A stretch of 64,000 bases of DNA from Podarcis melisellensis (lineage: Eukaryota), in the NCBI GenBank assembly GCA_964234715.1, contig OZ174290.1; one strand, given 5' to 3'. The notes beneath the pieces are model-generated. The model searched no databases. It was given only the letters and a program-made list of their open reading frames with translations, and was not told the origin of the DNA. Shown here in pieces: positions 24,314 through 47,279 of this stretch. Numbering within the stretch: the first letter of the stretch is position 1; each line of letters opens with the position of its first letter. A program made the position numbers and the translations under genes.

Positions 24314-24623
24314 ATGCCTCCCAGGACCCCCTCGCTCTTGGAGCTGATGTCTTGGGCGCTCGCCCTCCTGGGCGCAGCCTGCTCGCAGACCGTCGAGCTG
24401 CTGCAGGAGGCCGCCGAGGGCCAGCTCCGGCCCGCCGCCTCCTCTCCGGCCGGCCTGGCCGCAGCCCCGGCCCGCCCTCGCCCGCAGCCCCCGGCGCTCC
24501 GCTCCCCGGTGTACATGCTGCAGCTGTACCGCGCCCTCGTCGTGGGCAGCCCCCCGAGCCAGCCCAGCGCAGAAGCCTCGGCCTGGAGAGAATCCGACAC
24601 CATCCTCAGCCTGGGGGCGCGAC
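24314..24623 (+). CDS. NODAL: Nodal exon 1 (signal peptide and prodomain start, ...PVYMLQLYRAL...ESDTILSLGAR)
   Basis: Hydrophobic leader WALALLGAAC; Nodal prodomain motifs YMLQLY and SDTILSL; donor C|GTAAGT, phase 1. The start could alternatively be Met12 at 24347. Confidence 0.9.
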
Positions 24624-27601: not shown

Positions 27602-28416
27602 ATTATTTCCAGTTTGAGGACCACTGGGACTTCTCTTTTGACTTGACCTCCATTTCCAGCAGCTCTGATGTGAGGCTGGCAGAGTTCCGGGTCTGCCTGA
27701 CGCCTTTCCCCCAGTACAGGAGTGTCACTTTGAACATCTACCACAGCCATGAGCGCACCTGCCATGGGAACCAGACCTGCACAGACAAGATCTTCCTTGG
27801 TTCTTTCATTAGCAGGAACTCCAGCCACTCCTCCTGGAAAGTCTTCAATGCCACCAGCATACTCCGCTTCTGGCTCCACCAGGGGGTATCATTTGGCATG
27901 GGTGCTCCTGATGATCAGGAGAGGCACTGGGTGGAGGAGAACCTATCTCAGGACAATGACGGAAGATCAGCTGATGGGTTCCAGGGAAAATGTGGGTGCA
28001 ATGACGATCAACAGGCCCATGTATTGAGCCATAGCATGACTGACAGAGTCCTACTGGTTATCTTCTCCAAAGATAAGGAACTGGTGGAGCCCTCTCAGGG
28101 CCCAAGTCTCATCAGGACGGTGGAGATGTCCAAGTACATCATGATGGACAACACTTTCAAGGAGACGGGGGGCCGTCGGCACCGGCGGAACAGGAAGCAG
28201 AAGCAAAGGATTAAAGCGGCTAATATTTCCACCGCCAACTTTGGCAAAGAAGGGAGATCTCTGTGCAGGAGGGTAGATATGATTGTGGACTTTGAGCAGA
28301 CTGGCTTCGGAAGTTGGATTGTGCACCCCAAGAAATACAATGCCTACCGGTGTGAGGGAGAGTGCCCGTTGCCTGTTGATGAAACCTTCAAGCCAACAAA
28401 TCATGCATATATTCAG
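27602..28416 (+). CDS. NODAL: Nodal exon 2 (prodomain, furin site RRHRR, mature domain to NHAYIQ)
   Basis: ccttccag| acceptor in phase 1; CRRVDMIVDF...WIVHPKKYNAYRCEGECP...PTNHAYIQ; donor CAG|GTTTGT. Confidence 0.97.
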
Positions 28417-29186
28417 GTTTGTCTTTATGTTTGCATTTTAGGGGTCTTGGAAACTAGAAACTGGGTCCAATGCAGTATATCCAACTGCACAGTCCAGTCT
28501 TATATGCTTTATAAACAGCACATTAAGAACCGTGGAAAGTGAAGCCCATATTTATACACCTGCAAAAACCTTTCTTTTTCTCCTATCCATTAGTTGCTTG
28601 TATGCTCAGCTCTTAGTTCTGTATAGAACAATGATTTAACTAACACCGGGGATCATTTATGTATAAATACTGGTGATGATGAAGAGAAAGAAAAGGGCAT
28701 GAGGAGTCAGGACATGGATCCATGTAGCTCAGTATTACTGGCACTAACTGGCAGTGGTATAATTTAAAAAAATCGTAAGGACAGCTGAGGCAATCGGTGT
28801 TTTTTTCTGGGGGGATTAAGGGGTACACATACCCCTTAACATTTTGTGAATCTAAGTTTGGCCTCATTGAGGGGCAGTATTTCAATATGAGTAGGATAAT
28901 GAAAGTACCCCTAAACATTTTTTTAGGAAAAAAAGCAGTGGGTAGCATCATTTTCAAAAGCCATCTGTTACTAATCTGCAGGGCTGAGGGGGCATGACGA
29001 GTCCCACCCTAGGGCTACCTCCAGGGGGACCATAAGAAGGAGGTCTTATCCCACCAAGAATTTCAGCAAGTGACATAGCACTGGGCTACGATTGTGTCCT
29101 AAGGCTCTGTTTCTCTCCCCACCCCATCAGGAAATGTCAGTCCTGTTTTATTCCCCTACTGGCTTTTTGGGATGAATTGTTAACAT

Positions 29187-29478
29187 TGTTGTTGTTTAGT
29201 CATTTAGTCGTTTCCGACTCTTCGTGACCCAATGGACCAGAGCACGCCAGGCACTCCTGACTTCCCCTGCCTCCTGCAGTTTGGTCAAATTCATGCTGGT
29301 AGCTTTGAGAACACTGTCCAACCATCTCATCCTCTGTTGTCCCCTTCTCCTTATGCCCTCCATCTTTCCCAACATCAGGGTCTTTTCCAGGGAGTCTTCT
29401 CTACTCATGAGGTGGCCAAAGTATTGGAGCCTCAGCTTCAGGATCTGTCCTTCCAGTGAGCACTCAGACCTGATTTCC
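29187..29478 (-). mobile_element. BovB/RTE LINE 3' fragment in Nodal intron 2
   Basis: SLEKTLMLGKMEG.RRRG.QRMRWLD...WRALVH.VTKSR; (CAA)n tail; 9-bp TSD TGTTAACAT. Confidence 0.88.
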
Positions 29479-30848
29479 TGTTAACATGTTGTTAGTTAAT
29501 TACTTTCTCCAGCTCTCTCTAGAAGTTAGGCTTTGGTCCTAAATACTGTACATTTACCTAAGTTCAGGCTGTCAGAACTGGGGATGAAAAGCCAGCTGGC
29601 TCGGTCCCAGCTGGAGCGTCTCTCCTCTCCGCTGCTGCAGAGATCCATCGACTTCTGCTCCTCTGACATTCGTCAGTGACTCAAGCTGCAGTGAATACTT
29701 GAGCACACATTACTCAGCAGTGTAAACTGCACAACAGAAGAGGCTTGAGGCGTAGATACAATACTAAGGCCACACATTTGGCTGTGCTGGCAAGGGCTGA
29801 TGGGAGTTGGAGTCCCAACTTCTAGAAGGTCACAAATTCCTCAGCTTTGGTTTGAACAGACTCCACCATCCCCTGCACAATTCTATAAAGAGGCTCTCAC
29901 TGTTGAGGAAGAAATTTCACTGGCTTTTTAAAAGCCTTGGATTTTTAATTTTTAAGCAACAACAGTCCCAAGTGGGGGCAATTTAATGCTCCTTGTGAGC
30001 TGGTGCATTCCTTGGCCCTGCAATCCCCCCAAATGGAGGTGTTTTTGTCCTGCTTTGACCATGCACAAGGCACAAGAATGCCCTAGGCAGGCATGGCCAC
30101 ATCACCAGAGAGAGCTCCAAGTTAGCAGCTTGCTCCAATAAGCTCTGGAGGCTGGATCTCTGCCAAGGCTTTATATCCCTCTTGGGGCAGAGTGGCACTC
30201 CTTGGCTCCTTCCTGAAGTATGGAGAGCCTTGAAGAGGAATTCCTCCAGCCCTGTCAGCAATCAGCAAGTTTCCTCTGGGTTCCTTCTTTGCACTTGGGT
30301 TTCCTTGATGTAGAAGAGGCTGGTCCCTCAGAAGAAACTAGCCCAGTGGGTGTTCCCAGTTTGGGGGCCTGTCACAAGCCCTCAGTATCAGGCGCCTGGT
30401 CAAATCCCTTCCATAAGTTTATGGCACTGGTCTTTCTGATTGGGCTGGCCGCTCCTCCTCTTAGTCAAATTCCAGACTCTTTTATGTATTTGGGGTGGGT
30501 GTCACAAAATATTTGCACCGGATTCTGCCAGGTCATAATTGGACATGGTGGGACTGCACTGCTTACCTGACTGCCCTCCAGCCAAGTTGCTGCTGCGTTC
30601 TGGATTGAGAGAGGTGAGGCGGTGAGGTCAGCGCAGTGCAAACACATCATCAGAGCCAATCTGGTGCTCCAATCTGCATTTGCACTGCAGTGACCTCACC
30701 ACCTCACTTGCCCCTCTCTGTCGTAGTATGAAGCAGCTAGGGAGGTCAGGTAAGTGGTGTAGCCTCACTGCGCCCTGCCCTACTGCCCTTAACTACACTG
30801 TGCCAGTTCTTGGATATGATGTTTTCTTCTTCCTCCTTTCCCTTTCAG

Positions 30849-31001
30849 AGCTTGCTGAAGTTATACCAACCCAACCGGGTGCCTTGCCCATCTTGTGCCC
30901 CTGTCAAAATGAGCCCTCTGTCTATGATGTACTACGAGAAAGGGAAAGTGAGGGTCCGTCACCATGACGACATGATCATCGAGGAATGTGGCTGCAACTG
31001 A
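30849..31001 (+). CDS. NODAL: Nodal exon 3 ([18 protein letters not shown]...MIIEECGCN*)
   Basis: Polypyrimidine tract and ttcag| acceptor; terminal CGC cystine-knot motif; TGA stop. Confidence 0.97.
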
Positions 31002-47134: not shown

Positions 47135-47279
47135 NNNNNNNNNNNNNNNNNNNNNNNNNNNNNNNNNNNNNNNNNNNNNNNNNNNNNNNNNNNNNNNNNN
47201 NNNNNNNNNNNNNNNNNNNNNNNNNNNNNNNNNNNNNNNNNNNNNNNNNNNNNNNNNNNNNNNNNNNNNNNNNNNNNNN
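47135..47279. other. Assembly gap (N run)
   Basis: 145 consecutive n characters. Confidence 0.99.

Follow-up and report, generated by a model that had tools for sequence, protein, structure and literature searches.

The second intron of a lacertid nodal gene holds an ancient palindrome that has probably been decaying neutrally, one of its arms presenting a perfect splice donor by chance, to which a young acceptor mutation has been added. Donor and acceptor enclose a 23-nt pseudo-exon that the original prediction had taken for a micro-exon held in check by the hairpin and acting, when included, as an off-switch or as the source of a dominant-negative ligand. Given that the acceptor is missing from most relatives and that the element evolves in the manner of intronic sequence, an old neutral relic is the most likely explanation rather than a splicing switch. 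The structure, age, distribution and evolutionary rates of the element and the non-conservation of its acceptor are set out below, and we infer that the pseudo-exon is most likely not used in vivo.

The nodal gene and its second intron

The palindrome resides in a three-exon nodal gene on the plus strand of a 64-kb lacertid window, the window being the whole stretch of DNA that was analysed. The parts of the gene that matter here are the following.

24314..24623, plus strand: coding part of nodal exon 1, from the start codon to the donor predicted by the phase of exon 2
27602..28416, plus strand: nodal exon 2, coding for the pro-domain, an RHRR cleavage site and, up to the final NHAYIQ, the first half of the mature ligand
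28417..30848, plus strand: intron 2, GT...AG, 2432 nt
30788..30793, plus strand: CTTAAC, probable branch point of the intron, 56 nt ahead of the acceptor of exon 3
30849..31001, plus strand: coding part of nodal exon 3, with the second cystine-knot half of the ligand, ending in ECGCN, stop codon at 30999-31001

Protein searches were run exon by exon and not with the joined model. The translation of exon 1 shares 95% identity with residues 1-104 of the Podarcis raffonei nodal homolog (P0001). Exon 2, which carries Pfam matches to both TGF_beta and TGFb_propeptide, has the P. raffonei 'nodal homolog' as its first hit in a word-based protein search, at 96% identity, the next being Rhineura at 81%; the lower-ranked matches, many of which bear the name 'nodal homolog 2-A', come from other squamates, turtles, crocodilians and birds. 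Exon 2 ends at 28416 and is followed by GT, and exon 3 begins at 30849 directly after CAG, the intron splitting the TGF_beta domain after NHAYIQ into two recognisable portions (Pfam E 1e-12 in exon 2 and 4e-12 in exon 3). Among solved structures in the PDB, a Nodal/BMP2 chimera matches best. A 90% protein cluster brings together Podarcis raffonei, P. muralis, P. lilfordi, Lacerta agilis and Zootoca vivipara; the window is closest to P. raffonei, its non-coding sequence sharing about 94-96% identity with Podarcis and about 88-90% with Lacerta and Zootoca. As it matches none of these five genomes exactly, it would derive from a further lacertid, probably a Podarcis or a near relation. Judged by the names of its sequence matches and by the review PMC12344233, the gene is of the Nodal2 ('bird/reptile-type') kind, to which human NODAL is paralogous and not orthologous. 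The motif CTTAAC at 30788-30793 is invariant in the lacertids and Rhineura and is predicted to be unpaired (P about 0.9); it is probably the real branch point of intron 2.

In exon 3 of Lacerta agilis (L002:14054-14206), CGC (Arg) replaces the first cysteine of CPxC, giving VPRPSCAP in place of VPCPSCAP. The cysteine is present in all other nodal proteins examined, from caecilians to birds, and the arginine could be genuine, altering a cysteine of the knot or of the dimer, or could stem from an error of assembly. At 47135-47279 the window contains 145 N in a row, either an assembly gap or masked sequence.

Structure of the palindrome

The near-palindrome spans 30541-30776 (about 235 nt) of intron 2 and is predicted to form a single hairpin with these parts.

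30541..30642, plus strand: left arm, holding GCTTACCTGAC, the complement of the donor-like motif
30643..30678, plus strand: central loop, 36 nt between the inner arms
30679..30776, plus strand: right arm, containing the splice-like cassette

The long inverted repeat on which the original prediction was built is borne out in full. Its inner arms (30614-30642 and 30679-30707) are 29 nt long, stand 36 nt apart and are complementary at 26/29 positions (90%), and its outer arms, GCTTACCTGAC (30561-30571) and GTCAGGTAAGT (30745-30755), form ten Watson-Crick pairs and one G-U pair within a longer outer repeat of 30 nt (30548-30577 and 30739-30768) that is 77% complementary. RNAfold turns 30540-30780 into one continuous hairpin of -128.8 kcal/mol, the shuffled sequences reaching -88.1 +/- 5.2 kcal/mol (z -7.82), with none of the 200 shuffles folding as stably as the native sequence. 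A long hairpin is likewise found in Lacerta (z -7.5) and in Rhineura (z -9.1).

An Rfam scan of the element returned no family at gathering score, the best being MIR1858 with 32.9 bits vs a threshold of 137. A microRNA or another known RNA family was consequently rejected, the Rfam matches being those of generic hairpins far under threshold. The heptamer AGUGCAA beside the loop was also considered as a miRNA and dismissed, lying at the wrong place for a mature miRNA and not within a conserved arm.

Distribution and age among squamates

Orthologous loci were compared from five lacertids (L001-L005), the amphisbaenian Rhineura floridana (L006), a gecko (L007), a python (L008), the Komodo dragon (L009) and another squamate from a Logan assembly (L011). 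The palindrome, together with alignable flanks, occupies the orthologous position in P. raffonei, P. muralis, P. lilfordi, Lacerta agilis, Zootoca and Rhineura. It is absent from intron 2 of the gecko, the python, the Komodo dragon and the Logan-assembly squamate, in all of which this intron is short (0.3-1.7 kb) and shows no similarity to it. Being common to the lacertids and Rhineura, the palindrome is older than the lacertid-amphisbaenian split, which squamate time trees place well over 100 million years ago.

As regards its origin, a palindromic MITE had been proposed. No second copy of the palindrome was found in the 64-kb window or in the five lacertid loci (about 80 kb; about 140 kb in total), and no target-site duplication is recognisable at its ends, the insertion being old enough for such marks to have eroded. 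Terminal inverted repeats are trivially present in an element that is entirely an inverted repeat and are not diagnostic of a MITE or foldback transposon.

Two other segments of the window in the middle of intron 2, 29186-29440 and 29782-29853, match other places of the lacertid and Rhineura loci, and do so in inverted orientation; as interspersed repeats, they account for differences in the size of intron 2 between species.

Tests for selection on the hairpin

A hairpin with a function of its own, to which the pseudo-exon would be irrelevant, is a decidedly improbable alternative. Possible roles would be those of a dsRNA substrate for ADAR or Dicer, of a splicing aid for an intron of 2.4 kb, or of a DNA cruciform or regulatory element of the Nodal locus. 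The persistence of strong fold z-scores in lineages more than 100 million years apart is the first point that speaks for such a function. Against it, Nodal2 works in other squamates that lack the element, every Rfam family scores far short of its gathering threshold, and the inner stem has diverged between Rhineura and the lacertids at many positions, as that of a conserved microRNA does not.

Rates of change among the lacertids place the palindrome with ordinary intronic sequence: 25% of alignment columns vary in the palindrome, in the upstream intron and in the right flank alike, the values for the 3'UTR and the coding part of exon 3 being 23% and 5%. Within the palindrome, 14% of columns in the left arm (30541-30642) vary among the six lacertids vs 39% in the right arm and 25% in the background intron, an asymmetry that may arise in part from indels concentrated in the right arm. 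The somewhat lower variability of the left arm relative to background would accord with a functional hairpin.

The deeper comparison, between the window and Rhineura, shows the palindrome to be less conserved than its surroundings, identity falling from 73% and 77% in the flanks to 71% and 61% in the arms and 58% in the loop. Non-coding sequence elsewhere in the locus, including much of intron 1 and the upstream region, is colinear between the two and mostly 69-79% identical, so alignability is not particular to the palindrome. A conserved non-coding element, suggested by a 71% alignment to Rhineura over 1 kb, was for this reason rejected, and a conservation no higher than that of the flanks weighs against a function of the hairpin. 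The flanks themselves (30385-30540 and 30777-30848), which align with Rhineura at 73-77%, include the CTTAAC motif.

Selection on pairing was examined by swapping arms between species: under neutral decay, cross-species pairing should equal that of a species' own arms, whereas selection or arm-to-arm conversion should render the native combination better. The folding energies are -122.3 (window) and -130.7 kcal/mol (Rhineura) for the native constructs and -110.8 and -124.0 kcal/mol for the cross-species chimeras, and canonical pairs in register amount to 74-84% within the non-reference species and 83-88% across species. As pairing across species is about as good as native pairing, the arms have not co-evolved, the comparison involving two deep lineages only and being of limited power accordingly. 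When a perfect palindrome was evolved neutrally in simulation, 15-19% change per lineage led to folds from -132 +/- 17 to -105 +/- 16 kcal/mol and 76-82% in-register pairs, native and chimeric combinations being equal, a range that brackets the observed values. RNAalifold reported seven pairs changed on both sides in Rhineura, which a functional hairpin might call for; this is about the chance number at the 36% divergence of stem columns between the window and Rhineura. Compensatory evolution was hence rejected, there being no excess by the arm-swap test, the register test or the simulation. The arm-swap comparison and the neutral simulation account for the persistence of the hairpin with no need for selection.

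The splice-like cassette in the right arm

The cassette reported within the right arm is present as described, a TAG, a segment of 23 nt and CAG/GTAAGT occupying 30724-30755, 99 nt before exon 3.

30727..30749, plus strand: 23-nt pseudo-exon, with AG before it at 30725-30726 and GTAAGT after it at 30750-30755

Codon reading upholds the expected consequence as well: if included, the 23 nt would shift the frame and truncate the ligand at a stop inside exon 3, the terminal exon. CAGGTAAGT at 30747 is the sole perfect MAGGTRAGT 9-mer on both strands of the 64-kb window, about 0.04 being expected by chance per 2.4-kb intron, and the cryptic donor agrees with the consensus at 9/9 positions vs 7/9 for the real donor of exon 2, CAG/GTTTGT. 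A donor of full consensus that is unique within 64 kb is a point in favour of a regulated micro-exon. Acceptors are easier to come by, a simple pyrimidine-tract rule yielding 11 acceptor-like AGs in intron 2, so that one within 250 nt upstream of the donor is expected by chance. With its 9/9 donor and an acceptor with a good pyrimidine tract, the cassette would be splice-competent if the hairpin were opened. Two other acceptors for the same donor were tried and set aside as mere further pseudo-exons, the one (exon start 30582) delimiting 168 nt with in-frame stops and the other, after the conserved CTGCAG at 30684-30689, a 60-nt segment starting with TGA.

The corresponding positions in the window and in its relatives read as follows.

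Window: acceptor TAG; complete cassette
P. raffonei: acceptor TAG; complete cassette
P. muralis: acceptor TGG; donor CAA/GT
Lacerta agilis: acceptor TGG; donor GTAAAT, 5 nt added within the 'exon'
Zootoca: acceptor TGG; no other change noted
Rhineura: acceptor CGG; donor GTCAGG, 10 nt added within the 'exon'
P. lilfordi: acceptor deleted; 16-nt deletion spanning the acceptor and half of the 'exon'

An acceptor AG is found in two of the seven species: four of the six relatives are without it, P. raffonei possesses it and in P. lilfordi it is deleted. The donor is weakened in P. muralis, Lacerta and Rhineura. With TAG limited to the window and P. raffonei, parsimony points to a recent G-to-A change. 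The claim of a structure-gated off-switch or dominant-negative isoform does not survive this comparison, since the cassette is incomplete in close relatives, an outcome that had been named beforehand as speaking against it. Its completeness in the window and P. raffonei is what a regulated gate would have going for it. Functional micro-exons usually keep their splice sites, length and frame across related species, and the cassette fails to do so: the segment has indels of +5, +10 and -16 nt, neither its length nor its frame is kept, and 52% of the columns of the pseudo-exon and its splice sites vary among the lacertids, the highest proportion of any part of the element.

In P. lilfordi (L005:9580-9954), the deletion joins the pyrimidine tract to CAG/CTAGGGAGGCCAG/GTAAGT, creating a different pseudo-exon of 13 nt.

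Low and unregulated use of the cassette, restricted to the window species and P. raffonei as young splicing noise with no selected function yet, carries only a small probability. It would accord with the recent G-to-A change having made TAG in exactly the clade that keeps the perfect donor, and with a cryptic pyrimidine tract and AG that are only partly paired in the predicted fold (P(unpaired) about 0.35). The donor, predicted to be paired with a probability of at least 0.999, the very short exon and the lack of any annotated isoform for P. raffonei all weigh against it.

Masking, temperature and the splicing of intron 2

Partition-function folding of 30500-30848 was carried out in silico from 5 to 70 °C. 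As had been predicted, the donor is paired in the modelled fold (P(unpaired) of the nonamer about 0.001) and the branch-like CTCAC motifs are largely so (about 0.11), and both would be compatible with a gate. The pyrimidine tract of exon 3 has a P(unpaired) of about 0.9. Gating of the cassette by temperature, which had been suggested for an ectotherm, is contradicted by the model, in which the P(unpaired) of the donor is at most 0.001 at 5 to 42 °C and 0.013 at 70 °C. With its donor paired at all temperatures from 5 to 70 °C, the hairpin would be a constant mask and not a thermosensor, and its failure to melt in silico leaves the gate with no plausible physiological trigger.

Evidence on the splice junction itself comes from Rhineura, which has a processed, 5'-truncated retrocopy of the gene (L010 3875-5774, CM057609.1), 98% identical to its parent (L006) and sitting on the opposite strand in an intron of a gene with CUB and PDGF domains. 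The retrocopy joins exon 2 directly to exon 3 (...CATATATTCAG/AGCTTG...). It is colinear with exon 3 and about 1 kb of 3'UTR up to an AATAAA run; exon 3 is the last exon. The canonical NHAYIQ/SLLK junction is likewise present in all six lacertid database proteins, including that of P. raffonei with its full cassette, the retrocopy and the RefSeq models alike reflecting the major isoform only. The retrocopy corresponds to a second Rhineura 'nodal homolog 2-A-like' gene (P0003, 345 aa), in which the exon 2-exon 3 frame is still open, and its homology to the parent ends at the AATAAA run.

A regulated gate, whereby opening of the hairpin by temperature, helicases or ADAR editing would admit the 23-nt micro-exon and give a truncated, NMD-resistant Nodal without cysteines 4-7 as an off-switch or dominant negative, is extremely unlikely in view of the acceptor being lacking in P. 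muralis, Lacerta, Zootoca and Rhineura and deleted in P. lilfordi, of a 23-nt exon being poorly defined without enhancers, of the retrocopy and annotated proteins showing canonical junctions only, and of a hairpin that shows no melting in the model.

Comparison with known systems

The original prediction had also drawn a parallel with human NODAL, whose intron 2 was said to contain a described cassette exon. Such an exon does exist in the literature: it measures 116 bp, its donor is created by the minor T allele of rs2231947, and its inclusion leads to a premature stop in the terminal exon and to a protein that is secreted and lacks canonical signalling (bioRxiv 10.1101/254409, 10.1101/276170; Findlay & Postovit). 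It sits in Nodal1, and with the lizard gene being of the Nodal2 type, any parallel would hold only between paralogues. Like the human variant, the lizard cassette lies between the exon of the first ligand half and the last exon, is predicted to cause a frameshift with a stop in the terminal exon and loss of the cystine knot, and is completed by a single-nucleotide change; the analogy of a SNP-created cassette in the same intron, with its premature stop in the last exon, would lend the gate some plausibility. The human exon, however, has been shown by experiment to be spliced, is 116 nt long and is not known to lie in a hairpin, whereas the lizard segment is 23 nt long and a candidate exon at most. 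The resemblance is on paper only, what is seen being an intronic pseudo-exon in an old inverted repeat.

In its consensus-quality sites, its donor placed in a stem, the lack of conservation of these sites and the absence of evidence of use, the lizard feature is akin to intronic pseudo-exons, unspliced AG...GT pairs that look like splice sites, among them those silenced by local RNA secondary structure. It departs from typical cases in that the donor lies within an old palindrome of about 100 bp and not in a short local stem, and in that its acceptor is a lineage-specific point mutation. MITE and foldback insertions offer another likeness, the element being compact (about 235 nt), composed of two arms and a short loop and confined, among the squamates compared, to Lacertidae and Rhineura; unlike them, it has no recognisable target-site duplication, and no further copy turned up in the window or in about 80 kb of other lacertid loci. 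With RNA thermometers and temperature-dependent occlusion of splice sites, it shares a splice motif occluded by pairing. Known thermosensing RNA structures have only marginal stability and open at physiological temperatures, unlike the lizard hairpin, whose donor the model keeps paired as far as 70 °C.

Proposed history and significance

The favoured account of neutral decay would run as follows. An inverted repeat of about 235 nt arose before lacertids and Rhineura separated, and its source could have been the remnant of a hairpin-forming transposon or a local inverted duplication. It would since have decayed at about the neutral intronic rate, and the pre-mRNA would still fold into a very stable hairpin upon transcription. 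One arm happens to read CAG/GTAAGT and would be permanently paired to its complement in the other. A TAG 23 nt upstream of this donor would then have arisen by one G-to-A change in the lineage of the window species and P. raffonei, completing a pseudo-exon on paper that would be a by-product and not a maintained regulatory cassette. Normal splicing would proceed from exon 2 to exon 3 by way of the unpaired branch point and pyrimidine tract 3' of the hairpin.

Low-level, lineage-specific use of the cassette or some other role of the dsRNA are, taken jointly, unlikely. Occasional inclusion of the micro-exon upon unwinding or editing of the hairpin in the clade of the window species and P. raffonei, with a secreted but signalling-dead Nodal2 fragment as the product, is very unlikely; if true, it would make a young lizard counterpart, in a paralogous gene, of the human NODAL variant created by a SNP. 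Were the switch real, an ectotherm would provide a rare instance of a key morphogen of the embryo having its output gated by RNA structure, and the human NODAL splice variant would have an independent parallel.

Should the element be the neutrally decaying palindrome favoured here, the arm-swap comparison of complementarity within and across species would offer a simple means of separating neutral decay from selection. On this account, a perfect donor motif can remain in an intron over very long periods without harm, as the arm of a palindrome, and a long hairpin can last for more than 100 million years through slow neutral decay alone.
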